Source of the DNA: Epithemia pelagica
Taxonomy: Eukaryota; Protista; Bacillariophyta
Assembly: GCA_946965045.2 (NCBI GenBank)
Contig: OX337228.1
Location: 4,898,001 to 4,962,000 of the forward strand
Direction of reading: 5' to 3'
DNA length: 64,000 nt
Part shown: one piece after another, positions 15,901 to 30,586 of the stretch
Numbering within the stretch: the stretch's first letter is position 1
Layout of the letters: each line of letters starts with the position of its first letter
Program-made: the position numbers and the translations under genes
Notes under the pieces: model-generated
Told to the model about the DNA's origin: nothing
The model's database searches: none
The model's input: only the letters and a program-made list of their open reading frames with translations

Positions 15901-18900
15901 ATGGCAAGTAATCAGATCGCTCACTGTTCCACGTCGGCTTACTACCGTCAAACTCGCAAACGTGGGAAAGTTATTAAGCAGGTGGGGCAGAAATATGTGC
16001 GAAACGATTTAGGATTCGGGATTACTTACACTGCAGCAAATGGCCATGAGGACGATGACGACGACCATCACTCTGAAGCTCATATTGGTAGCAACTACGA
16101 CGGCCAACATGGAAAGAAACGACGGAAACGCAGCCATGCGAAAAGCAATCTAAATAGTCAAGTAGATCATGTGGTTGGTCGTCCTTATGTTATTCCTACT
16201 GCAGAGGAGCTTGTCTCGAAATGGTTGATCGAATCACCATCCAACAGTATTCACACGTATTTGGTCGTTGTGGACACAAACGTCCTGTTGCACAATCTGG
16301 ACGTCTTGGAAAAGGCTGTGATTGGCCAAAACGATGGAACGATTGCTGGTACCGGTTTAATGCCCAACATTGTCATTCCTCAAACCGCACTCATGGAATG
16401 CCGTTCCAATCGACTCACTACCTATGATCGATGCGTCGACATCTTGCGATCCATCAAAATGACAAAAGACTCAGGAAATCAATCAAAAACTAAGACGACA
16501 TCATCGACTTCGTCGGCTGGTGGCCATTCAGGGCGACCCTATTGTGCCATTTTCTTTCCTGATCACAATCATGTTGCCACCGCCTCTGAGAATTCGCCCT
16601 CTTCTCCTGCAACAATCGATGGACCAGCCTTGTCGGCCAATGACGCTAATGATCTTCGAATTCGGCGTGTTGCGCATTATCTCGCAGAACATACACGCGA
16701 GACCAATGTCAAAGTGGTTCTATTGACTGACGATAAGGCGTGTCGTGAAAAGGCTCAGCGAGAGAGCGCATCTCTCTATCAAGCTCATTCGGTGGCAAGT
16801 TGGACCAAAATCTTGGAGCAGGCCAATCCTGGTATCAGTTACTCTTTGTCTGACCTGGTGGCTAACTTTCACATGCCCACGAATGATGGCCGAACCGGTG
16901 AAGGGCCCCATGCTTCATCATCATTTGTTCTGGCGGGGCACGATAAGTACACGTCGCATGTCGATGATACCGACTTGTCTCGAGGTATACAGCAGGGTAA
17001 ATTCCATCGGGGTATTTTCCGCGTCGTTTTGCAGGCGCCTAATGGATATCAACGCGTCGGATCAGTCACCATTAGACAAGGTGACGAACGCGTGGCGGTT
17101 ACGATTGTGGACCAAAATTGCAATCGTGCCATTGATGGGGATGTAGTGGCAATTGCTGTTCATCCGGTTGAGAAATGGATCGACGGGCAACAATCATCGG
17201 CAGTTACGACATGCAAATCTTCCAATGCGGAACCTGTCTCCGATGAGAAATCGTTATCAGTTCCAGCGGGAATCATGAACGAGACGTCAGATCCTACGCC
17301 GGCTGATCTTGAAAACGTGTCCGACCAGATCAGATTGGAAACCGATAAAAAAACCGACGCATGCTCAATGCGACCCACGGGAAAAGTAGTTGGTATTATC
17401 AGGCGAAACTTCTCTTCGTACAGTGGATCGCTTCACGAGACATCGTTTGCTGCATCCACCGAACCTGGAAAAGATCAAAGTGAACCAATAGTTACTTCAG
17501 ACATGACTGAAAGGGAAGCCATAGCTTCGCAGTTTGAACGAGAACACGAAGATGGCACCCTTACCTGTACTTTCTTTCCAGTCGATCGCAGGGTTCCTCC
17601 CATTCTAATACGCACTACTCAGCGCGATCGTATGTTGGGGCAACGTATCATCGTGGCAATCGATTCATGGCCTCAGTACTCTTCCTTTCCTCTCGGTCAC
17701 TATGTTCGCACTATTGGCCCGGCTGGTTCGAAGGATGTGGAAACGCAGGTTTTGCTTCAGGAACACAATATACCGTATGAGCCATTTCCAGCAGCCGTGT
17801 TGGCTTGTCTACCTCCGGAAGATTACAAGATTGGCGCAGATGACAAGCCTTCGCGACTAGATCTTCGCCATTTGCCAGTACTCTCGGTAGACCCACCAAA
17901 TTGCAAAGATATTGACGATGCACTTCATTGTATGAAGCTTCCCAATGGGAACTATCAAATTGGAGTTCATATCTCTGATGTCACTCACTATGTGAAACCT
18001 GGCACAGCCATTGATCTGGAGGCAGCTGATCGCAGCACTTCGACATATCTGGTTAACAAAAGATTAGACATGTTGCCTGGGCTGTTGACCACTGATTTAT
18101 GCAGTTTGAAGGGGAATGTGGACCGATATGCCTTTTCAGTTCTTTGGGAGGTCACTGAAGATGCGGACATCGTAGAAGTAGAGTTTCACAAAACCCTGAT
18201 TCATTCTATTGGGGCGTTGACATATCAACAAGCGCAAACTCTAATTGACCAGCCGGATGATCCGAACGACATTCATGCATGTTCCGTCAAAGGATTGGCC
18301 AAATTGGCCAGAAAATTCCGAAAACGAAGGATTGATGCGGGCGCACTGACTCTGGCGTCTCCTGAAGTCAAGTTTGTTTTGGATAGCGAGTCTCTCAATC
18401 CTACCGATGTTCAGGCTTATGCCCTACTCGAAGCGAATGCGGTTGTAGAGGAGTTCATGTTGTTGGCAAATGTGACAGTTTCTAAAAAAATTCTTCGTCA
18501 CTACCCGACCATGTCCGTGCTTCGCCGTCATCCAGCTCCCAATCGCAGCATGTTTGACAGTCTCATTAGCAAGGCTAGATGCAAGGGGTTGAAGATTGAA
18601 ATTGATGATAGCAAAAGTTTGGCAGATTCTCTTGATGCAGCTCAGATTGAGTCTGATCCCTACATCAACAAGCTGCTGAGAATCTTATCGACACGATGCA
18701 TGTCGCCTGCTCAATATTTCTGTTCAGGAGAATTTCCTCCGACCGAGTGGCATCACTATGGACTTGCCGCCCCTGTCTATACCCACTTCACCTCACCCAT
18801 CCGACGGTAAGACTATGATGTCGGATTTCGATAGCCTTTCTTCAATGTGCGAAACTCAACACAGCCCTCTCCATTCCAGGTACGCGGATGTTTGTGTGCA

Positions 18901-19390
18901 CCGATTGCTTTCAGCAGCCATCAATGTCGCTCCGTTGTCACCACACCTTTCTTCAAAGTCGTACATACACGATCTTTGCGCCAATATGAATCGCCGACAT
19001 AGAGCGGCTCAAATTGCAGGCCGGGATTCAGTACAACTTCACACTCTTATTTTCTTTGCAGGGGATGGGGCCAAGGACGATTACGCGTATGTCTTAGATG
19101 TGGATACACGGGAAGTAAATAGTCCTTCGCTGAATGTCATAGTGCCCCGTTATGGTATCGAAGGCCGTGTTCGACTGTCGCTGAAGGCCAGTGATCCACA
19201 TTTATCACGGCTACCGAACGAACATAAATTGGTGTATCAACTCCCTCATAGTTCTCCTGTTTCAGTTCAGGTTTTCGACAAGATCAAGGTTCGCATTTGG
19301 GTGAAGCAGACCCCAGACCATCAGAGAGAATTAATATTGGACCTCCTTGAACCGATTTTGCCTGGAGTTACGACAAATAAGAATGACTAA
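15901..19390 (+). CDS. DIS3: Exosome complex exonuclease RRP44/DIS3 (PIN plus RNB); intron 18807-18879
   Basis: PIN motif VVDTNVLLH, RNB motif SVDPPNCKDIDDALH, and HYGLAAPVYTHFTSPIRR|YADVCVHR across a GT-AG intron. Confidence 0.97.
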
Positions 19391-19486: not shown

Positions 19487-20765
19487 TCACAACTCGTCTA
19501 TTGCTTTATCAAGAAGGCTTCTCAGCGTTTCAAAGTAGCTCTCATCATCAAGGATGACCTTACATGACTTCACGCATGCGTTGCGAAGTTCCATATCAGC
19601 GTCGCACTGGCCTTTCGCAGCAGCCGATTCACAGTCATAGTCAGCGTTGTCCTCAAATTTATAGGCAGCCCGTCCTTTGTCATTGTCAAGACTGTGGCCT
19701 CTGCCCCAATGCCGTCCAGCCTGCGCGAGATAATATCCTTCGTGACCATTCGGTGGGAAGTACGCGGTCGTATCGGAAGCGAATTCGTCAACGTTTTCCT
19801 CATTTATGTCTTCAAAATACAACGCAATCGCAAGTCGGAACTCTCCTGTCTCTCTATAGTCACAGTTACCAGTGCCATGCTTTGAATCACCACCGACCAG
19901 GACTCCCACATCATGGACAAAGTTAACCGGGACCTCCATGGTGGCTTCTCTGTCCCCAACCAAAAGTTGTGAGGGTCCAGACTCTGGGATCACAAGAGGA
20001 AAGATTATGTTGAAAACTTTCGTTCCCAGTCCATCTAGATCGCTGTGCATGTTGTATCCTTCGAAGTTAGAGACTAGAATAAAGCTTGTTCCATCGATCC
20101 AGATTCCGTCCAAACCGAACTTCTCACCCATAGTGTTGAGCACAACGTCAAAACCAGCTCTTCTCCATATATCTAGGACAAACTCGTAGGTTCTGAACAG
20201 CAAAAAGAGGAAAAGTCAGTCACAACACCTCAATCCAAAGCACAGCATGTCCTTGCTTAACGTACAGTTCGTCTGCAGGGTCAACCCACGTCATATCTCC
20301 TGCGAAAACAAACTGTGAGAATTTGAGTTCATCTGGTGACATAATTAAATGGTTACTCATCGTACCTTCGTGGGCCCAGTTTGCAGGACGTGAAGCTGCC
20401 CAACTTGATCCATCGTCGAGTTTGAAGACCCTATTTTCGCCAGGTTGAACTTGTTTCTCGTACAGCAAGCTGCGGAATATGTCCATCATTCCATGTTCAT
20501 TGATGTATCTAAGGAAGAGCTCTGTAAGCTTGGGAGGTAAGCCAACAAACATAGTCTCTGGATCTACGCGGTGGCCACTATCTCGTGCAACAACAGTTGC
20601 AAGATCGCCTGGTCTCAAGTGTTTTGGTAAAAGGGCGCCAGGCTGTTCCTCAGCAGAACATATTTCCACGCTGCCATTCAAGAGATCTTTCCGACTTATG
20701 TGCTGATAACTGGACACTTCTGGAACCATTAGAACGGCGGCAATAAGCCCAGAAACCTTCATCAT
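19487..20765 (-). CDS. Secreted hypothetical protein with C-terminal ShK-like Cys motif; introns 20300-20365 and ~20196-20263
   Basis: Signal peptide MMKVSGLIAAVLMV; GT-AG introns join ORFs 20220-20792 and 19487-20203; C-terminal DCESAAAKGQC...NACVKSCKV. Confidence 0.6.
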
Positions 20766-21250
20766 GGTATTTTCGCAACGATGACTTATCATTTGAGCTT
20801 AGTGATCTAACATGTCTTCGTGGCGTCCAAAAGGATACCAATTACCAATACGATTTCTCATAAGTACGAGTACACCAAAAAATGTACAATACTACCTAGG
20901 TAGTTCCATAGATTATAGATTCGGCAAGACCAAATATAACTGCCCCAACGCCTGAGAAGTCTTACAATAATCCTTTCTGTTGTGCTTAAGTCGAAAAATG
21001 ATTGAATAGATCCGTTGGACAAATAATAATTCTGTGAGCGTCCGTCGCGACTCTGTCCGCGCATACCGACCATGACATCATCTTCATCTCAAGTCCGAGT
21101 CCGAGAGTGAGAGGATCATGGCATGCGGGTACAAACTTTTAGGTGTATTGTAGTCTATGTCGCAGATGTGGATGCGACCATTGTTTGTGTGGATGACCAA
21201 TGACCACTGACATTGACGACCACCACAATAAAAAAGTTGTGATCTATGAG

Positions 21251-21294
21251 GGGAGTATCCCTCCGACTAGATGTCCGCTTCTTAGCTCGTCTGT
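21251..21294 (+). repeat. Left terminal inverted repeat of the MULE
   Basis: Core CCCTCCGACTAGATGTCCGCTTCTTAGCTCGTCTGT (21259-21294) preceded by GGG-N5. Confidence 0.85.
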
Positions 21295-21434
21295 TCGGGC
21301 AAGACAAACCCAATCTCACAGACAAAAAAATCGATTGGAAATTTCTAAAAAAATGTTTTTTTTTAAATTTGACCTTTTGAACCATCACTGGAATCACGCC
21401 AGCCATCCCTTTCACATACCCTGCTCCAACTGTC

Positions 21435-24400
21435 ATGTCATTTTTCTTCATCGTCCCACCATACCAGCATCTCATCATGGCAAGCAATGAAAGTTTCCAG
21501 ACTGCAATCGACGATGCCATTCACCAACAATTCCATTGGCATGCAGAACTATATTTCAATGACGTAGAGGGCCACGAAAATCCCTTGGAACTTTTCCAAT
21601 TTACCAACAAAGAGTGCTTTACGGCGCAACGATCTACAGTCAAGCATGAGCGGAAACATCTTGTCATATTTGATCGCAAAAAGTACCCTCCTGATAAAGA
21701 TGGCATAAAGAAACTATCCATGGCTTTGAAGACAGAGGGTATTAGAAAAGGAACAAATCTCATTTCACGTAACAGCCCCCTTGTACTCTCGTGCTATCGA
21801 TGCAAGAAACACACTCCATCTCAATCAGCAGAGGAGGCCTTACACACACAGTCAAACACTCAACAGGAGCAACATTCCGCCGAATCAGAAGAGGATCCAC
21901 AATTTGATGAAGATGGCATTATGCTTGGAATACGTTCATATCGAATTCATCGCGACAAAGCCCAGGCTCGTGCCAATGGCAAAACAACAAAACGGGGCAC
22001 TTTTACCATGAGACCTATTCAGTCGGACCAAACTTGTAAGGTTTCTCTGCGGCTTGGGGTTCAAGAAGGACCCAATGGATATATTTTCCTAAAGCAAGGA
22101 TGTGGCCATGCAACACACAGTTTCCATCCGAAACCATGTCCTGGGGATGTACCGTTTCAAACTCGGCATTTAAAGGACAGTACCCGCCAGCTCATTCTTT
22201 CCGCGCGCACTGCATCTACGGGAAGCACAGCAATTCGATATCTCGTACTACAAAATCAACACGAGCTTGTTGGAAGAGGAACAATCCAGCACATTCAGAT
22301 GGTTCCTGAATTCCTCCGACATCCATCAGAGAACCATTCCACTGCATTTGCAATGGTTAGTTGGTTAAGAGAAAAATCCCAAGATTCATCAGTTAATCTT
22401 CGCTATTGTTTCTTGTCTTGCAATCCTCTTCATGATCCTGGTTATCATTGTCACCCAAAAGGACGCCCACCTCAGCAAGGCCGTATTTCCATAAAAGAGG
22501 TTCGAAAGAACATGGAGTACGATGATGTACTTCAAAGCACCTTCCGAGTTGGTGGACCAAATACCGAAGAGAAACAGGAATCTCATACAATTTCCCACAA
22601 TGACGATTCCTTACATCAAAGTGTCAAACTGACCCGCACACTCCATAAACAGTTCCATCTTGGAGATGAGATGTCGAAAAGAATTTTCCTTGGTTCTGGA
22701 TGGGTTGACGCAGAATCATTTGCTCAATTTCAACGTTTTCCTGAAGTTCTATTCATTGATTCCACGCATAAAACCAACAATGAAGCCCGTCCACTGTTAA
22801 TGGTATGTGGCCGTGATCAATGTGGCAAAGCATTCGTTATTGCCCGTATCTTCATGCCGAACGAGACAAGTGCCTTCTATCGATGGATTTTTCTTAAGTG
22901 TTTGCCAAATATTCTTGGTACTGAAAATCTGGCTCGTGTGCGAATGGCAATTACCGACGGAGACGCTCAAGAATTTGAGGCAGTGGAAGAATCGTGTCTT
23001 GAACTTTTGACTAATGCCAAAAGAGGCAGATGCATGTACCATATTGTGCAAAAGACATATGAGCGATATATATCCAACCACATTTGCCGTAATCAATCAG
23101 GGCATATGGTTTTGAAGGGGATAAAGGCGTGGATCTACACATGGGGTGATGGTTCGTCATGTGTGTCTGAGGACCAATATCTCTTGTCAAAGTCCTTGCT
23201 CTTGAAAAAGATACAATCCAAAGATTTTGAAAGTATGATTACAACTGATGGAATGTCGTTGATTGAAAAATGGCTCCAGGAAAAAATTATTCCCAATGAG
23301 AGGTTTTTCGTATTTTGGTCCAAACGATTCCTTCGCTGTTTTGATGAGTACATGAATAACTCAGGCGAGGCCATGAATCGTTCTTGCAAGCGTTCCGATA
23401 TTGCTGCCCGACCAAACATGACCATGGCAACATCTGCAAATGCAATGTTGAATCAGTCTATCTTAGCTTCACGCCAAAGAAAGAGTGATCAGTTGCGCCA
23501 ACTTGTTGAGATACCACTATACATAAAGTCAAACTCCCAACATAATCTGGATGCACTCAAGAAAATCAGTAACTTGGCTCGTCACATGGTAATACAGCAG
23601 TATCAACAACGCAAGGAGTATACAATTGTTCGCCATGATAAAGTTACTTGGTATGTTCTTCGGAATGGTGTTACAGCAGGATCAGAGTTTAACCACATTG
23701 GAAACTTTGGCCAAATGGGGCTTGCTCCACCTTGTTTCAAGAATGCGTGGAAAGTCAACTTAGATTCATGTGGTATCCTCATATGCAACTGTGGATATAA
23801 ACATCGACATGGTATACCCTGTCGTCACTTATTCGCAATTGAAGAAGAATATAATTTGTCAGACATTGCAATACGTTGGCAATTGGCATATGCATACTAC
23901 GCCTTTGATCAAAATTGTCATTCGATTACTGCATCATATGTCAATGCAATGGAGGTCGATCACCAAGGACTCAAACTTAAAACTCAAATTGAAACTGAAA
24001 CCAGTATGGTATTTCCATATATCTGGTCAGGGACCCAGTATACCATAGAGGAGATCTATGAAGTCGTGAATAGCTGTATCCCTGTCTGTTGGAACTATTC
24101 CATTGATGAATATCCAAAAGAATACCAAGCCACTGAAAAAATCTCTAGTCAACAAGCGGTGGGTGACTCCGGCTCTCTGACAATCGAGGATGATATTGCT
24201 TTGGCACAGTCACATGAAGAAACAGATTTCGAACATTTCCAGTATACACAAGAATCCGTGGAGTGCCCCAATCATCAGCTTTCTTTCCCGATAAATCGAG
24301 AAACCACCCAAGCTGAAATTATAACTGTCCTCAAAGATATGTTGCCGCTCTTTGATAACAATCTATCCCGTTACAAACTGTTGCAAGTTCTCCTTAACGC

Positions 24401-24620
24401 TCGGCAAGAACAGAGTAAACAAATACTCCAACGGCAGTCAACTGCGTCACGTCGACAATGGACAGGGACGTCTGAAAGATCCCGATCTATTCTTGCAGAG
24501 AACAGTGCTGTCCCTGAGGACCATACCACCTTTGTTTCATCGAATGTTCCTTTCGACCAAAGCAAAACAAGTAGCCAGTGTACGTACAGACAAAACAGAA
24601 ACAAAAGAATGCGGAAGTAG
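21435..24620 (+). CDS. MULE transposase with FAR1/WRKY-like N-terminal Zn motif, DDE core and SWIM finger (ATG at 21435 or 21477)
   Basis: FPEVLFIDSTHKTN (D1), AITDGDAQE (D2), RCMYHIV (CxxH), NNSGEAMN (E) and SWIM CNCGYKHRHGIPCRHLFAI in an uninterrupted 1061-codon ORF. Confidence 0.95.
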   Translation: MSFFFIVPPYQHLIMASNESFQTAIDDAIHQQFHWHAELYFNDVEGHENPLELFQFTNKECFTAQRSTVKHERKHLVIFDRKKYPPDKDGIKKLSMALKTEGIRKGTNLISRNSPLVLSCYRCKKHTPSQSAEEALHTQSNTQQEQHSAESEEDPQFDEDGIMLGIRSYRIHRDKAQARANGKTTKRGTFTMRPIQSDQTCKVSLRLGVQEGPNGYIFLKQGCGHATHSFHPKPCPGDVPFQTRHLKDSTRQLILSARTASTGSTAIRYLVLQNQHELVGRGTIQHIQMVPEFLRHPSENHSTAFAMVSWLREKSQDSSVNLRYCFLSCNPLHDPGYHCHPKGRPPQQGRISIKEVRKNMEYDDVLQSTFRVGGPNTEEKQESHTISHNDDSLHQSVKLTRTLHKQFHLGDEMSKRIFLGSGWVDAESFAQFQRFPEVLFIDSTHKTNNEARPLLMVCGRDQCGKAFVIARIFMPNETSAFYRWIFLKCLPNILGTENLARVRMAITDGDAQEFEAVEESCLELLTNAKRGRCMYHIVQKTYERYISNHICRNQSGHMVLKGIKAWIYTWGDGSSCVSEDQYLLSKSLLLKKIQSKDFESMITTDGMSLIEKWLQEKIIPNERFFVFWSKRFLRCFDEYMNNSGEAMNRSCKRSDIAARPNMTMATSANAMLNQSILASRQRKSDQLRQLVEIPLYIKSNSQHNLDALKKISNLARHMVIQQYQQRKEYTIVRHDKVTWYVLRNGVTAGSEFNHIGNFGQMGLAPPCFKNAWKVNLDSCGILICNCGYKHRHGIPCRHLFAIEEEYNLSDIAIRWQLAYAYYAFDQNCHSITASYVNAMEVDHQGLKLKTQIETETSMVFPYIWSGTQYTIEEIYEVVNSCIPVCWNYSIDEYPKEYQATEKISSQQAVGDSGSLTIEDDIALAQSHEETDFEHFQYTQESVECPNHQLSFPINRETTQAEIITVLKDMLPLFDNNLSRYKLLQVLLNARQEQSKQILQRQSTASRRQWTGTSERSRSILAENSAVPEDHTTFVSSNVPFDQSKTSSQCTYRQNRNKRMRK

Positions 24621-24907
24621 ATTCCTATTCCACGACACGAGTGGTACGTGCTCCATAGGACACGTTATGACGGGATTACTGTAATGCAACAACGAAACAC
24701 TTCTGAAGACAAATTATGCCAAAGGGTTGGCTTTGATTAGCAATAGTAGTTTTCTCACTTCATGGATTTGTAGGAGAGTCAATAGTTACCAAACGCACCC
24801 TCACAGAAATGGGTCTTCTGAAACGCAGACAACAACACATGCTCTATAGGTCATAAGGCACAACAAAGAAGCATTTCCAACAATAAATCATATCAAAAGT
24901 ACTACTT

Positions 24908-26587
24908 TTAGGAAGTAGATGCCAAAAAGTTGACAATACACTCTTCCAAATCAGTCAATGGCAGGTTATTGTCATTTTTCCCAACGACAGCAGTCTTCAA
25001 GTACACAGAGAGACAAAGGACATCTGTTTCCACCACCCTCTTCGAAACACAATGGTGAACCTGAGGATTGAAAATCAAAATGTCTTGGTTTCGTAAAGCA
25101 ACTTTTTGGCCAAGTCCTGGAAAAACAAAATAGCATAACACTTCGTCACGATTTGGATTTGCCTCATCGGTCATTGCAACAACTGCCGAATATCCAAAGT
25201 CTTGGTCCTTATGTGCAGCTAAGAATACATTTCTTCCAAAAGCAATGGCCGAAAAAAATGTTGTCGGTTGTTTGATATCTTCTGATGAGAGAGTAGGAAT
25301 CTTTTGGATTTCTCTCATGTTTGCGCCAGCAAAAACCACTGACCAATCCATCCATTGACAAAAACTTTCCTCAATCTGTTTGACATATCGCACCAAGGTT
25401 GTCTTTTCTGTTTTCTTCAGTTTGCTAAGTTTCGATTCAATAAGACCACGCCCTCCACGATTGGCATGTACTCCCACGGTGATATAGCTGGATGCATGTG
25501 ATTCGTGACCGACAAAACGAGACTTGCCTCGTTGCTGTTTTGGAAATATACCTTCAAGCTTTGTTAAAGCAGAAACCAAACGCTTTTGCACACATTTGCT
25601 CGTCAGCTCTGGATTGTATGGAGCTTTTACAAAAATTGGTTGAGTGTTTGGATTCGGACGGAAAATTGCTCCCTCATCACCCACATCTGTTGTTGCAAAC
25701 ATTGACAGAGATTGAAATCTTGGGACAGTTGCACCTTTTGTTTTGTTTAGAGCGTAGTATTTGTCATTGGACTCCTCTTCCTTAAAAACAAAACAATGTC
25801 GGTCAAGCAAACTTTCATCCATCCGGCATTCGGTAGGAGCTTCTTTCACTTGGTGGTTGATCTCAATCCTGCTTGTTTTCTGGCTACGTCGTTTCCTTTG
25901 TTTTGGGCTACGTGGTTTGGAGCAAGCTTGGAGAACAGCCTCTGCAACTCTGGTTCTCTTCGAAGAGTTTCTGTTTGATTGGAACGTGTACACCATGGAA
26001 GTAACGTCTATTCTCTTTGCATCCATTCCCATGTTGAGATTCTGCATGATCTGAGTAGAAGATAATCCTTTAGCTCTTCCCGCCCTTGGTTTCATCTCAT
26101 CCTTTGAGGATGAATCCACCTTGGGCAAAGCGGTGAGCCCCTTTTTGCCTGGAAGGCGCGGGGCCAATCTGCCACTCTTAAGGAAGGCTTCAGGATCACC
26201 CACAGCACCAGTGGACAACTTCTTCACAGACGACTTGAGACCATCTCCCAATGCCATTCCCGCCCTTGGTTTCATCTCATCCTTTGAGGATGAATCCACC
26301 TCGGGCAAAGCGGTGAGCCCCTTTTTGCCTGGAAGGCACGGGGCCAATCTGCCACTCTTAAGGAAGGCTTCAGGATCACCCACAGCACCAGTGGACAACT
26401 TCTTCACAGAAGACTTGAGACCATCTCCCAATACCATTCCCGCCCTTGGTTTCATCTCATCCTTTGAGGATGAATCCACCTCGGGCAAAGCGGTGAGCCC
26501 CTTTTTGCCTGGAAGGCACGGGGCCAATCTGCCACTCTTAAGGAAGGCTTTGCAAGGGAAAAGATTACAATTATTGGATGATGCCAT
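24908..26587 (-). CDS. 2OG-Fe(II) dioxygenase, TET/JBP-like, with N-terminal 60-aa tandem repeats; the 5' end may extend by splicing
   Basis: HxD in FLAAHKDQDFGYS, the strand run YFVFPGLGQKVALRNQDILIFNP and distal His in VHHCVS fit the double-stranded beta-helix order of TET/JBP enzymes. First ATG is at 26587; the track start at 26617 is TTG. Confidence 0.7.
   Translation of the reverse strand: MASSNNCNLFPCKAFLKSGRLAPCLPGKKGLTALPEVDSSSKDEMKPRAGMVLGDGLKSSVKKLSTGAVGDPEAFLKSGRLAPCLPGKKGLTALPEVDSSSKDEMKPRAGMALGDGLKSSVKKLSTGAVGDPEAFLKSGRLAPRLPGKKGLTALPKVDSSSKDEMKPRAGRAKGLSSTQIMQNLNMGMDAKRIDVTSMVYTFQSNRNSSKRTRVAEAVLQACSKPRSPKQRKRRSQKTSRIEINHQVKEAPTECRMDESLLDRHCFVFKEEESNDKYYALNKTKGATVPRFQSLSMFATTDVGDEGAIFRPNPNTQPIFVKAPYNPELTSKCVQKRLVSALTKLEGIFPKQQRGKSRFVGHESHASSYITVGVHANRGGRGLIESKLSKLKKTEKTTLVRYVKQIEESFCQWMDWSVVFAGANMREIQKIPTLSSEDIKQPTTFFSAIAFGRNVFLAAHKDQDFGYSAVVAMTDEANPNRDEVLCYFVFPGLGQKVALRNQDILIFNPQVHHCVSKRVVETDVLCLSVYLKTAVVGKNDNNLPLTDLEECIVNFLASTS
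26077..26550. repeat. Coding tandem repeat, 180-bp period, ~2.6 copies
   Basis: Unit starts TTCCCGCCCTTGG at 26077, 26257 and 26437; encodes AFLKSGRLAPCLPGKKGLTALPEVDSSSKDEMKPRAG... on the minus strand. Confidence 0.97.
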
Positions 26588-26611
26588 AACACAATCACTA
26601 GAGTCTTGTTG

Positions 26612-27757
26612 GAACAAAAGCAGGGTACTGTTAGAATGGTCGTTGCCTGTAGTTTATTGAGCTGTATTGCATTGTCTTGTAGCACTTACCGTTGGAAAGT
26701 TATGGATTGACAGAGGACTAGAAAACAAAACAAGGGCAGCTCCAAAGGAAAATTGCAATCAATGATAGCTCAGGCCACCAATCTCGCCTGAACAAAAGCA
26801 GGGTACTGTTAGTATGGTCGTTGCCTGTAGTTTATTGAGCTGTATTGCATTGTCTTGTAGCACTTACCGTTGGAAAGTTATGGATTGACAGAGGACTAGA
26901 AAACAAAACAAGGGCAGCTCCAAAGGAAAATTGCAATCAATGATAGCTCAGGCCACCAATCTTGCCTGAACAAAAGCAGGGTACTGTTAGAATGGTCGTT
27001 GCCTGTAGTTTATTGAGCTGTATTGCATTGTCTTGTAGCACTTACCGTTGGAAAGTTATGGATTGACAGAGGACTAGAAAACAAAACAAGGGCAGCTCCA
27101 AAGGAAAATTGCAATCAATGATAGCTCAGGCCACCAATCTCGCCTGAACAAAAGCAGGGTAGTGTTAGAATGGTCGTTGCCTGTAGTTTATTGAGCTGTA
27201 TTGCATTGTCTTGTAGCACTTACCGTTGGAAAGTTATGGATTGACAGAGGACTAGAAAACAAAACAAGGGCAGCTCCAAAGGAAAATTGCAATCAATGAT
27301 AGCTCAGGCCACCAATCTCGCCTGAACAAAAGCAGGGTACTGTTAGAATGGTCGTTGCCTGTAGTTTATTGAGCTGTATTGCATTGTCTTGTAGCACTTA
27401 CCGTTGGAAAGATATGGATTGACAGAGGACTAGAAAACAAAACAAGGGCAGCTCCAAAGGAAAATTGCAATCAATGATAGCTCAGGCCACCAATCTCGCC
27501 TGAACAAAAGCAGGGTACTGTTAGAATGGTCGTTGCCTGTAGTTTATTGAGCTGTATTGCATTGTCTTGTAGCACGTACCGTTGGAAAGATATGGATTGA
27601 CAGAGGACTAGAAAACAAAACAAGGGCAGCTCCAAAGGAAAATTGCAATCAATGATAGCTCAGGCCGCCAATCTCGCCTGAACAAAAGCAGGGTACTGTT
27701 AGAATGGTCGTTGCCTGTATTTTATTGAGCTGTATTGCATTGTCTTGTAGCACTTAC
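26612..27757. repeat. Non-coding tandem array, 178-bp period, 6 full copies plus one partial copy
   Basis: Unit start AACAAAAGCAGGGT at 26613, 26791, 26969, 27147, 27325, 27503 and 27681; copies differ by only a few substitutions. Confidence 0.98.
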
Positions 27758-28040
27758 AGTTGTGGAGTTGCAAGTTGGGCTGCAATTGCTTCTTTTGCTG
27801 CTGTTTGCTGTGGTCGGAGGGTCTTTTTGGTGAGTTTTTGTTGGTTGTGGGGCGGGGAGAGACTGGGTCTGCTGTCTGACCTGAGTTTTCCACTGGTCAA
27901 TGGGATGTTGATCAGAAAGTTGTTTGGCAGTTGATGAGAGCGCGCCAGCCTGTCCCTCGGAGGGCCTGCGCGTTGGGAGGGAAATTTTTGATGTGAGTTT
28001 CTATATTGTACAGAAGGTCAGACGGAATGTTGGAGGCAGG

Positions 28041-28084
28041 ACAGACGAGCTAAGAAGCGGACAACTAGTCGGAGGGTAATACCC
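28041..28084 (-). repeat. Right terminal inverted repeat of the MULE
   Basis: ACAGACGAGCTAAGAAGCGGACAACTAGTCGGAGGG (28041-28076) is the reverse complement of 21259-21294 with one mismatch, followed by N5-CCC. Confidence 0.85.
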
Positions 28085-28410
28085 GTACTGCCGCCAGGTA
28101 GAATTCGATAGCGGTTAGCGTGTCTCGTGTCTCACTTTAGCAGCGGCCTCTGGTGGTAGCCTCCTATGTGAAAGAAGCAAGTTATGGGAGTAGCTGTACA
28201 AGTACTGGAGCTAACGAAGAGACGGAGGATAACTCTACCAATTTCTCTGCAACTTCCGGTAATGGACTCAAAACGTAGGTAATCCTTCTACCACTCAGAG
28301 TATCGTCACGATATAACATTTTTCATTATCACACATCACACAGTAATACCTCTTATATGATCATACTAGGTACAGATTATTTCAATATGAGGAAAACATC
28401 CAGAGTCACG

Positions 28411-28500
28411 GATGTCGGAGGATTTGGTAGATGTCGGATGATGTCGGATGATGTCGGAGGATGTCGGAGGATGTCGGATGATGTCGGATGATGTCGGATG
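28411..28500. repeat. 10-bp minisatellite ATGTCGGA(T/G)G, 7 contiguous copies at 28431-28500 plus one at ~28411
   Basis: Read directly from the sequence. Confidence 0.95.
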
Positions 28501-29017
28501 TTTTTATCGCCAAAAGAATATGTACTCTCCAGCAGTTGGAATTCTTCATGAGAAATCTCAAGGTTACAAGTCACTGATTGACGGTAGGCCCATCAACTGA
28601 AGGAGCACCGCTGGATTTTGAGGCAAACCATGTTTGCGCGCGAGCCCGAAACGACATCAAACAAGATCAAACGACATACAAACGACATACCTTTCGACAT
28701 TCCCGTTTGTTCCATACTAGAGAATGGTAAATCATATTCTATGGTATCATAATACGTACTTTGTATTAATATCGATCCTTTGTTTCGGTTTCGTCCGTTG
28801 GGTATTGGGAGAGAATATGCGACTCACGTGTAGTTACCGGAAGTTGCTGCCGCTGCACCGTAACCGTGGGCCGGACCACTCGACCGACACACAACAGACG
28901 GTGGGGCGATCGGTCGCGGTTAAAGATTTTCGTAAGGGTCAAGGCTCGAATTGTTGCCTCTTGTCTTCTTGAAAGTGTTGGTTGATCAGGGGTCCATAAG
29001 AGGATTGACACCTGAAA

Positions 29018-29570
29018 ATGTTCCGACGTCATAGACAGGTTGCGGCCTTAATCATTGTGTTGTTGCTTGGTTTGGTGAAGGTGTGCAATGGACAAGATCA
29101 AGAACCTCCCCACGTTGCATTCTTGTCCTCCATGAAAGAAAAGTTCGATGATATGGGTCCTCGGAGCAAATTTGCGGTTGGAGCAGCAGGAGGATTCGTC
29201 GTAACTCGCATTGCCCTGGGGACGGCCATGACTGCGATAAAAATTGGCGCTCTCGCCTACGTCACGTAAGATATTTGTCGAAAATTGAAGACACACGGCC
29301 ATCAAATTCTCACGCTCTAATTTTATTCAACATGTTAGATCCGAAGTGCTGGATTATACAGGCATGTTAGACGTTGACAAGTCAATTGCCGATTTGACCG
29401 AAAGTAATTTATTCAACAAGATTCAATCCACGGCGTCGACCTACGCTTCAAGCTTCAAATCAAAAGTACGACGTACACTTCATCCCTCGGTGATGCAAGA
29501 AATATTTGAGAAAGAACGAATGGCAGCGTTGGGGGGTACAAGTGGGATCGTAGTCGGACTTCTCTTATAG
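29018..29570 (+). CDS. Small membrane protein, possibly FUN14-like; intron 29266-29338
   Basis: Signal peptide; Gly-rich hydrophobic AVGAAGGFVVTRIALG...KIGALAYVT|SEVLDYTG; a GT-AG intron joins the two ORFs in frame. The family call is from resemblance only. Confidence 0.55.
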
Positions 29571-29971
29571 GAGTAGCTTATTGTAGAATCAGAAGATTGG
29601 ATAACCATCCTCCAATGGCACTATCATCATCGGAAGATTCAGTTCTCACGAACTGCCTTGATTTCCTCATCGATTCAGCAATCATAAATTTCCAAAACAA
29701 CACAATGCGGTTTATTCTGTTCCCACGGACTGCATTTCAACACAAGGGATCTTCAATCCCCGAGTTTATTTGTGTCCTGATAATTCTTAGGTACCCTCCA
29801 AAGAGGAGTACTCCTAGAAAGGAGTAGGAGTAGATGTGTCAACTCCAGCACTCAGGAGTACTCCTCTACCCCTACTAGTAGAAGTAATAGTTGAGTCATG
29901 GAAAGATGAATCGCGTATGATGGCGAAGAGATGACATGGTGACTGGTGACATTGGTGATCTGTGATCTGTA

Positions 29972-30586
29972 AGGGCTGGGTAAGCCGATCCATGTTCGGC
30001 TAGGTAGGTTCAGTACAAAAGCTACGTATTGTACATAAAATCCCATAGTACACGTCATACCTGAAATGGTGGGAAGTCCGAAAAAATGCAAAAACACTCC
30101 ACGATGACGGCGAGATCCGGTGATGCCGTATGCATTCACTCATGCATCGCATCAACATCCGACTACTGTAAGTTGTTTGAGTTTGCTAGTATTACTGCGT
30201 TCTGCAGCTACAGAAGATTTGTCGTGTTGGATCAAAAGGTATAATCATTTTTCTTTGGTGATGTATTCCAAAAACCTTCCTAACTTCATCATTTCTCAAC
30301 GGTGACTGAATCAAATTGAAAGCATAGTTGATCTAGTAGTAAAGAGTCTTATTCTAGAAGTGATTCAGTCAAGCCCAATTATCCAGGAAGTTATTGCCAT
30401 GGGGGTGATGGCTTCGACCATTGTCTAATGGTGGCTTCCGGATTGCATTGTTTCTCGTGGCGCCATGTTTTCGATTTGCGACTCGGTGTGACCATCCGCC
30501 CCACTTGTTACAGTCATGAAAATAGTACTACGTAGCTTAATGTACTGAACCTACCTAGCCGAACATGGATCGGCTTACCCAGCCCT
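29972..30586. mobile_element. Non-autonomous MITE, 615 bp, 46-bp perfect TIRs, TA target duplication
   Basis: TIR AGGGCTGGGTAAGCCGATCCATGTTCGGCTAGGTAGGTTCAGTACA at 29972-30017 with its exact reverse complement ending at 30586; TA at 29970-29971 and 30587-30588; no long ORF. Confidence 0.95.

Follow-up and report, generated by a model that had tools for sequence, protein, structure and literature searches.

Introns ahead of the start codon raise gene expression in plants and green algae (intron-mediated enhancement), and in engineered genes more copies of such introns in the 5' untranslated region (5'-UTR) give more effect. Kyakuja-Dileera-Zisupton DNA transposons of fungi carry TET/JBP genes, and introns in leaders, the multiplication of introns by tandem duplication, and repeats within transposons are each known singly. 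In human cells, HUSH recognises and silences mobile elements with long intronless transcription units, an effect that is counteracted when introns are inserted (PMC8770142), and introners as in, e.g., Micromonas are repeated sequences with splice signals that act as introns (PMC4540971). A published paper on Mutator-like elements (MULEs) of diatoms describes a transposase with an E3-ligase-like cargo and no arrays. Here, we examine a 178-bp tandem array in a window of 64,000 nt from the diatom Epithemia pelagica (GenBank assembly GCA_946965045.2, contig OX337228.1, positions 4,898,001 to 4,962,000 of the forward strand), where it lies inside a Mutator-like transposon ahead of that element's TET/JBP-like dioxygenase gene. 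Judged from the sequences of this locus and its paralogs, the array is probably a tandemly amplified, spliceable, AUG-free 5' leader of the dioxygenase gene, built from modules that each combine a short non-coding exon with a U2-type GT-AG intron. Distant relatives keep this design, which argues for a real multi-intron leader rather than a junk repeat.

Anatomy of the array

Tandem Repeats Finder reports 6.5 head-to-tail copies with a period of 178 at 26612-27762 (98% matches, no indels), and a repeat search of the window finds six in-register copies at 178-nt spacing. By DNA search of the 60.5-Mb genome, the unit occurs at this locus only. On the minus strand, which is the sense strand of the dioxygenase gene, the array has seven donors (27757, 27579, 27401, 27223, 27045, 26867, and 26689), six of them GTAAGT and one GTACGT (the unit at 27579). 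Each of the six full units reads GTAAGT...TTCTAAC...CTGCTTTTGTTCAG over 80 nt and continues for another 98 nt, and the six differ from each other at just 7 positions. The 80-nt part starts with GTAAGTGCTAC and closes with CCATTCTAACAGTACCCTGCTTTTGTTCAG, carrying the branch motif TTCTAAC (TACTAAC in the unit at 26867) 21 nt upstream of TTGTTCAG, and the 98-nt part starts with GCGAGATTGG and closes with CCATAACTTTCCAACG. This anatomy confirms the original prediction, made from the letters of the window, that each unit of a 178-bp array joins an 80-nt intron-like part to 98 nt, and its description of the 98-nt part was also correct, with a stop codon in all three frames and a second acceptor-like sequence (TTGTTTTGTTTTCTAG). 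Its claim that the array ends exactly at donor 27757 stands insofar as the outermost donor is the boundary, though weak homology to the array runs about 12 nt further upstream. At the other end, a seventh, partial copy follows the consensus to position 78 and then reads CCAACAAGACTCTAG TGATTGTGTT ATG; the next acceptors are CAACAAG and then CTCTAG, 10 nt ahead of the ATG at 26587, and the gap between the array and this first ATG is 25 nt. The resulting features are as follows, with the basis of each in brackets:

26612 to 27762, minus strand: whole array, 80-nt intron-like part plus 98-nt exon-like part six times, then a seventh intron-like copy (repeat analyses, unit reading)
27758 to 28040, minus strand: unique 5' segment, A/C-rich and ATG-free, ending ...CCACAACT at the first donor (ATG count)
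27678 to 27757, minus strand: predicted intron 1, 80 nt, GTAAGT...TTCTAAC...CAG (unit reading)
27580 to 27677, minus strand: predicted non-coding exon, 98 nt, ATG-free, stops in all frames (unit reading, ATG count)
27500 to 27579, minus strand: predicted intron 2, 80 nt, donor GTACGT (unit reading, host introns)
27402 to 27499, minus strand: predicted non-coding exon, 98 nt (unit reading)
27322 to 27401, minus strand: predicted intron 3, 80 nt (unit reading)
27224 to 27321, minus strand: predicted non-coding exon, 98 nt (unit reading)
27144 to 27223, minus strand: predicted intron 4, 80 nt, not folding better than shuffled sequence (unit reading, fold test)
27046 to 27143, minus strand: predicted non-coding exon, 98 nt (unit reading, fold test)
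26966 to 27045, minus strand: predicted intron 5, 80 nt (unit reading)
26868 to 26965, minus strand: predicted non-coding exon, 98 nt (unit reading)
26788 to 26867, minus strand: predicted intron 6, 80 nt, branch motif TACTAAC (unit reading)
26690 to 26787, minus strand: predicted non-coding exon, 98 nt (unit reading)
26598 to 26689, minus strand: predicted last intron, 92 nt via CTCTAG or 85 nt via CAACAAG (acceptor reading)
26585 to 26597, minus strand: last 10 nt of the leader (TGATTGTGTT) and start codon ATG at 26585-26587 (sequence; conserved N-terminal motif directly after it)

The unique segment 27758-28040 presumably holds the promoter and the first non-coding exon; paralogs have analogous CA-rich segments ahead of their arrays.

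Five introns read in the window served as host reference. They are about 70-130 nt long, start with GTAAGT, GTAAGA, GTACGT (two introns), or GTACGA, contain branch-like CTGAC or CTCAAC in three of the five cases, and have pyrimidine-rich 3' ends with CAG, TAG, or AAG. By its signals, the 80-nt part is typical of this set, and GTACGT, which two of these introns use, is nothing unusual as a donor here, in line with the original prediction, which had taken the one GTACGT copy as valid. With a host-like donor, a branch motif, a pyrimidine tract, a YAG end, and an appropriate length, the 80-nt part qualifies as a candidate U2-type GT-AG intron. A strict splice composite (GTA[AC]GT, CTRAC, pyrimidine tract, and YAG within 53-133 nt) is expected by chance 0.0018 times per 178 nt on one strand; outside the array, it is present at two sites in the window, of which one (20265) is a host intron among those read. 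One gene that serves as a host-intron reference is a Dis3/Rrp44-like exonuclease gene (PIN, CSD, RNB) at 15901-19390 on the plus strand, which has an intron of about 70 nt near 18806.

Conservation across paralogous subfamilies

A six-frame genome search with the dioxygenase domain revealed about 20 paralogous copies at 40-59% identity, many of them beside a related transposase. In four further subfamilies (A to D), whose dioxygenases are 47-55% identical to that of the copy studied here, Tandem Repeats Finder applied to the paralog loci (numbered L029 and upward) uncovered 178/179-bp arrays that precede the dioxygenase on its sense strand; several of these arrays are seen up to the locus edge only, and their unit counts come from a motif search. 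The units divide as follows:

Subfamily A (L029-L033): intron-like 62 nt plus exon-like 117 nt
This copy: intron-like 80 nt plus exon-like 98 nt
Subfamily B (L034-L037): intron-like 96 nt plus exon-like 83 nt
Subfamily C (L040, L044): intron-like 97 nt plus exon-like 82 nt
Subfamily D (L041-L043): intron-like 96 nt plus exon-like 82 nt

The intron-like part thus varies from 62 to 97 nt across the five subfamilies, yet the period is constantly 178 or 179. Units of every subfamily contain GTAAGT on the sense strand and a pyrimidine-rich stretch with CAG at the end of the intron-like part; CTAAC or CTGAC follows GTAAGT in this copy and in subfamilies A, B, and D, and subfamily C has just TTCTCAT. 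Overall, the unit consensuses are only 33-51% identical between subfamilies, and the intron interiors are their least conserved part. In an alignment-free comparison, GTAAGT is the sole 6-mer that each of the five circularised units contains (expectation from shuffles: 0.0035 shared 6-mers), and the 5-mers common to all five (GTAAG, TAAGT, TCTAA, CTTTG, CTTTT, and TTTTG) correspond in sequence to parts of the donor, of a branch-like motif, and of pyrimidine tracts. With one or two changes, the exon end CATAACTTTCyAA can still be made out in four subfamilies of the five.

The position of the arrays is conserved as well. Those of the paralogs stop 18-143 nt ahead of the first ATG, with the shortest distance in subfamily B. 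Except in subfamily C, this ATG is fixed as the start codon by what stands directly after it in the other four subfamilies, the conserved N-terminal motif (V/L)K(G/S)GR...GLTAL. The subfamily A array stops right after GTAAGT and is followed by a unique, non-repeated 98-nt intron (...ttctttccag) and then 50 nt of leader; since the array of this copy starts at a donor, array ends in both cases respect splice sites. Variants at the splice signals mostly keep their function, as with GTACGT and TACTAAC here, the GTAAGT/GCAAGT mix of L043, and a 3-nt acceptor shift in L036. The donors of the L043 array (L043:2782-3858) follow the order GT, GC, GC, GT, GC, GT. At L036:2769-3861, acceptors alternate between CAG and CAC-AAG, with every second unit shifted by 3 nt, giving an effective period of 358 bp.

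Other arrays are found outside these subfamilies. In L056, a more distant relative whose transposase is 43% identical and whose locus shows no dioxygenase, a 179-bp array of at least 4.9 copies occupies L056:5030-5898. L050 and L051, from another subfamily (transposase 56-57% identical), carry a 97-bp array with 14 and 9 copies, respectively (L050:4580-5940, L051:612-1487), which has no splice-like signals and lies directly after the transposase stop, in the place of the dioxygenase.

Distribution of ATG triplets

A leader that is scanned by ribosomes should avoid AUG, and an intron that is removed need not, which is the basis for using ATG triplets as a test of the array. The exon-like parts of the five subfamilies, exon-exon joins included, contain no ATG at all, with 7.6 expected from mononucleotide shuffles and 6.6 from dinucleotide shuffles (P=2e-4 each), and the intron-like parts contain five. 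As the exon-like parts hold nine CAT, the absence of ATG is not an effect of composition. On the sense strand of this copy from 28318 to the start of the open reading frame (ORF), the ATGs are solely those found once per intron copy. The unique 5' segment 27758-28040 has none in its 283 nt (2.2 expected), and the ATG-free run of 579 nt from 28319 is the longest of 2508 gaps in the window (mean 51 nt). Removing the seven introns in silico yields a predicted spliced leader, counted from the inner terminal-repeat edge, of 881 nt without any ATG and with stops in all frames, so that no other ATG lies between the terminal repeat and that of the ORF. When a simple splicing rule is applied, 8 of 12 copies have zero exonic ATG; the other four trace to a mis-set first donor, to donors that the rule overlooked because they are mutated or of the GC type, or to one upstream ORF of 4 codons. 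It is hard to account for this pattern other than by transcription of the array and removal of its intron-like parts.

The predicted leader and its possible role

Located between the element end and a conserved start codon, and with an AUG-free predicted mature form, the array has the makings of a 5' leader. The original prediction had taken the array for an exon-intron cassette amplified within the dioxygenase gene's 5' region rather than a plain satellite, and the recurrence of this architecture in four diverged paralogous subfamilies, each time abutting the start codon, bears this out. Further backing comes from the splice signals as the sole conserved words and from the exclusion of ATG from exon-like and not from intron-like parts. 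A plain satellite was rejected on the strand-specific splice words, the strand-specific ATG pattern, and the fixed place ahead of the start codon; a coding array was rejected too. Among the roles that had been suggested, a multi-exon non-coding leader fits these observations. The copy-number comparison that had been proposed as a check gave 6-8 units for intact element copies and about 1 to 8 for copies with intact ORFs.

We infer from these observations that transcription would start in the A/C-rich stretch of about 280 nt that separates the right terminal repeat from the first donor and run through the array. Either the seven introns would be removed one by one or any donor might be joined to any later acceptor, and variable exon skipping is conceivable because all sites are alike. 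The product would be an AUG-free leader with little structure and a length of up to about 0.9 kb, along which scanning ribosomes would come to the ATG at 26587 before any other. The module probably arose by internal tandem duplication of an exon-intron unit before the subfamilies split, with each array homogenised on its own since then. By analogy with other systems, we hypothesize that several splicing events near the 5' end raise or license expression of an otherwise intronless transposon gene, possibly by intron-mediated enhancement, loading of export factors, or escape from surveillance of intronless transcripts. In addition, the nucleosome-sized and length-constrained unit suggests a constraint or role at the level of DNA or chromatin. 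Combining both aspects, the array could be a device to "look like a host gene", in which efficient introns at nucleosome length load splicing-dependent marks and factors onto transcript and chromatin and keep a DNA-demethylating enzyme expressed against host silencing, with an intron number that is tunable by unequal exchange. This extended version is a speculation that we consider rather doubtful.

Weighing the explanations

Several observations weigh against a spliced leader. The seventh copy has no CAG acceptor, the donor of one L042 unit is dead (GAAAGT), and the constant period of 178-179 is not accounted for by splicing. With about 1 to 8 units in copies that have intact ORFs, neither a fixed number nor multiplicity as such is strictly required. 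Inside the subfamilies, splice signals vary no less than other positions (7/65 versus 79/828 variable sites, p=0.67), in a comparison of low power that is further weakened by the redundancy of the array, which would relax constraint on single sites. The unit of the L056 array lacks a canonical donor and is ATG-free on the strand antisense to the transposase. An exon-exon junction word had no matches in metagenome contigs, and two junction words had none in the genome that would indicate processed copies, results that are uninformative either way on splicing.

The variable unit number and the lack of depletion of variation at the signals would suit a neutral by-product, in which genuine spliceable introns were multiplied by tandem duplication, itself a known process, and functionless arrays grow and shrink by unequal exchange; their multiplicity would be tolerated since splicing takes out the introns and leaves AUG-free exons. 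We see a real but minor chance that this is correct. A neutral minisatellite should have been lost or changed its period in some subfamilies, whereas array, position, and period are kept in all five despite the low identities of units and proteins given above. The unit stays at 178-179 while the neighbouring unique leader segments vary between 18 and 143 nt, which means that length change is otherwise tolerated, and it is the truncated dioxygenase copies L045 and L047 that are preceded by arrays of shorter period (130 and 133 bp). That the period remains constant while the split between its two parts shifts (62+117, 80+98, 96+83, 97+82, and 96+82) could point instead to a DNA-level element such as a nucleosome-length satellite that phases chromatin, a boundary, or a landing pad for the transposase or dioxygenase, with the splice-like motifs being secondary, and the donor-less 179-bp array of L056 without a visible dioxygenase would fit in as well. 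However, this explanation, which we consider improbable and which can coexist with splicing without replacing it, leaves unaccounted for why GTAAGT and the branch-like and pyrimidine-tract words are conserved on one strand, why the exclusion of ATG is limited to exon-like parts, and why arrays end on splice sites. Unlike transposase-binding subterminal repeats, the array is moreover found at one element end only; a Mutator subterminal repeat was rejected on these grounds, with nothing comparable in 21295-21435 and a unit of 178 bp.

Promoter or enhancer modules are known to occur as repeats elsewhere, and if the array were an upstream repeat of this type, transcription could start downstream of it or within each unit, with nothing being spliced. 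This is very improbable, given that untranscribed DNA would have no reason to avoid ATG on one strand and in one sub-segment or to maintain the order of donor, branch, and acceptor words, and that the gap from array to ATG is just 25 nt here and 18 nt in subfamily B. We give even less credence to a host of small or structured RNAs (mirtrons, intronic small nucleolar RNAs (snoRNAs), or a source of small interfering RNAs), although tandem exon-intron units with one RNA per intron are known from clusters of the SNORD116 type. An Rfam scan of 20000-30000 gave no match in the array at E<=1, the folds of introns and exons from three subfamilies do not surpass those of shuffled sequences (z -0.2 to +1.7), and the intron interiors, where such RNAs would reside, are the least conserved part of the unit. 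Mirtron, snoRNA-host, and structured-leader readings were rejected on the Rfam result and the shuffle-level folds, and the original prediction's idea of a structured-RNA or small-RNA platform found no support. A spliced and AUG-free leader thus remains the explanation that we favor as the probable one.

The element and its dioxygenase gene

The Mutator-like transposon that contains the array is 6.8 kb long and bounded by 36-nt inverted repeats (21259-21294 and 28041-28076, 97% complementary) whose core recurs at at least 40 places in the genome. Despite nearly perfect terminal repeats, a 9-bp target-site duplication is not evident at 21241-21250 / 28085-28093. Its other features are:

21250 to 21294, unstranded: left terminal inverted repeat (inverted-repeat search, reading of ends)
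21435 to 24620, plus strand: MULE transposase with SWIM-type region, convergent with the dioxygenase gene (Pfam PF10551, 1.3e-14)
24908 to 26587, minus strand: TET/JBP-like 2-oxoglutarate (2OG)-Fe(II) dioxygenase ORF, 559 aa, intronless (ORF, triad, Atlas neighbours, folds)
26077 to 26550, minus strand: 180-bp in-frame array, 60 aa x 2.6, repeating the dioxygenase N-terminal module (Tandem Repeats Finder, ORF)
28041 to 28084, unstranded: right terminal inverted repeat, 36-nt core 28041-28076 plus imperfect extension (inverted repeat with 21259-21294)

The dioxygenase residues H197, D199, and H250 (HxD...H) are invariant across eight paralogs, and the nearest Atlas clusters carry PF12851 (Tet_JBP). 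The protein itself has no Pfam match, with the thresholds of PF12851 and PF20515 not reached, and PF20515 matches two of eight paralogs at E=0.028. PDB sequence searches with the single sequence and with a paralog profile gave no significant match. An AlphaFold model of low confidence (predicted local distance difference test (pLDDT) 58, template modelling (TM) score about 0.4) has CcTet as its best fold match (5.7e-7), and NgTET1, FTO, CMD1, and TET2 are further solved folds that match. On this weak model, the downstream gene would encode a double-stranded beta-helix closest to TET with an HxD...H iron triad.

The 180-bp coding array (26077-26550) adjoins the 178-bp array, and its module is the conserved LKxGR...GLTAL; the subfamily A dioxygenase has the same N-terminal module twice, about 48 aa apart. 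Homology between the 178-bp unit and this neighbouring coding repeat was rejected on alignment scores inside the shuffle range. Just outside the right terminal repeat, at 28411-28500, the 10-bp sequence GATGTCGGAK is repeated nine times, and an inverted counterpart, AAACGACATM, is repeated four times at 28649-28688, 150 nt further on; the two look like the ends of a small foldback element or one resembling a miniature inverted-repeat transposable element (MITE). The 10-mer of the 28411-28500 array also occurs once in the intron of the Dis3-like gene at 18817 (6 matches in the window versus 0.17 expected). In keeping with a diatom host, the genome has at least 11 full-length silicon-transporter genes and TTAGGG telomeres. 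One subfamily A copy (L052:1-541 with L030) lies at a telomere, with 541 nt of CCCTAA and the terminal repeat about 60 nt further in.

Significance and relation to known systems

If spliced as predicted, the array would show that, in nature, a mobile element can gather many identical introns in the leader of a gene that otherwise has none and has kept this design through deep divergence. It would then become testable in transformable algae whether introns serve as a mark of "self" and protect genes from silencing in organisms other than animals. As regards annotation, gene callers will take such arrays as satellites, start the gene model at the ATG, and miss a leader with seven predicted introns. 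A separate puzzle is the fixed period of 178-179 bp despite shifting exon/intron borders, which links splicing units with nucleosome-sized DNA. Our literature searches turned up neither Mutator-like elements with a TET/JBP cargo nor leaders made of repeated intron-bearing units like these, diatom cases included. The exon-end plus donor motif gave 31 single matches in metagenome contigs and no long-period array, and we therefore took these matches as chance rather than as relatives in other organisms.

The fungal Kyakuja-Dileera-Zisupton elements are alike in their TET/JBP-like cargo, which is here carried by a Mutator-like element in a diatom; to our knowledge, a repeated intron-exon leader has not been described for them. 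The likeness to HUSH targets is by analogy only, with both ORFs of the element being long and intronless and its predicted introns concentrated in the leader. HUSH is a vertebrate complex, and we know of nothing comparable in diatoms. Introners are dispersed over many genes, whereas the 178-bp unit is found at one locus and always in tandem; as it is not dispersed, and as its conserved motif matches just the arrays of this element family, an introner element was rejected. SNORD116/115-type clusters share the head-to-tail units of non-coding exon plus intron, but their introns carry conserved structured RNA, unlike the array introns with their lack of Rfam matches, lack of stable folds, and poorly conserved interiors. 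Like the introns of intron-mediated enhancement, those predicted here lie near the transcription start and ahead of the start codon. However, the known natural leader introns are one or few and unrelated to each other, while the diatom array is a homogenised tandem for which such an effect is hypothetical. The multiplication of introns by internal tandem duplication is similar in that a whole-intron segment is copied head to tail and the new introns are flanked by small exons. The diatom array, for its part, is non-coding, has 6-8 copies, keeps a fixed period in five deeply diverged subfamilies, and occupies the leader of a transposon gene.

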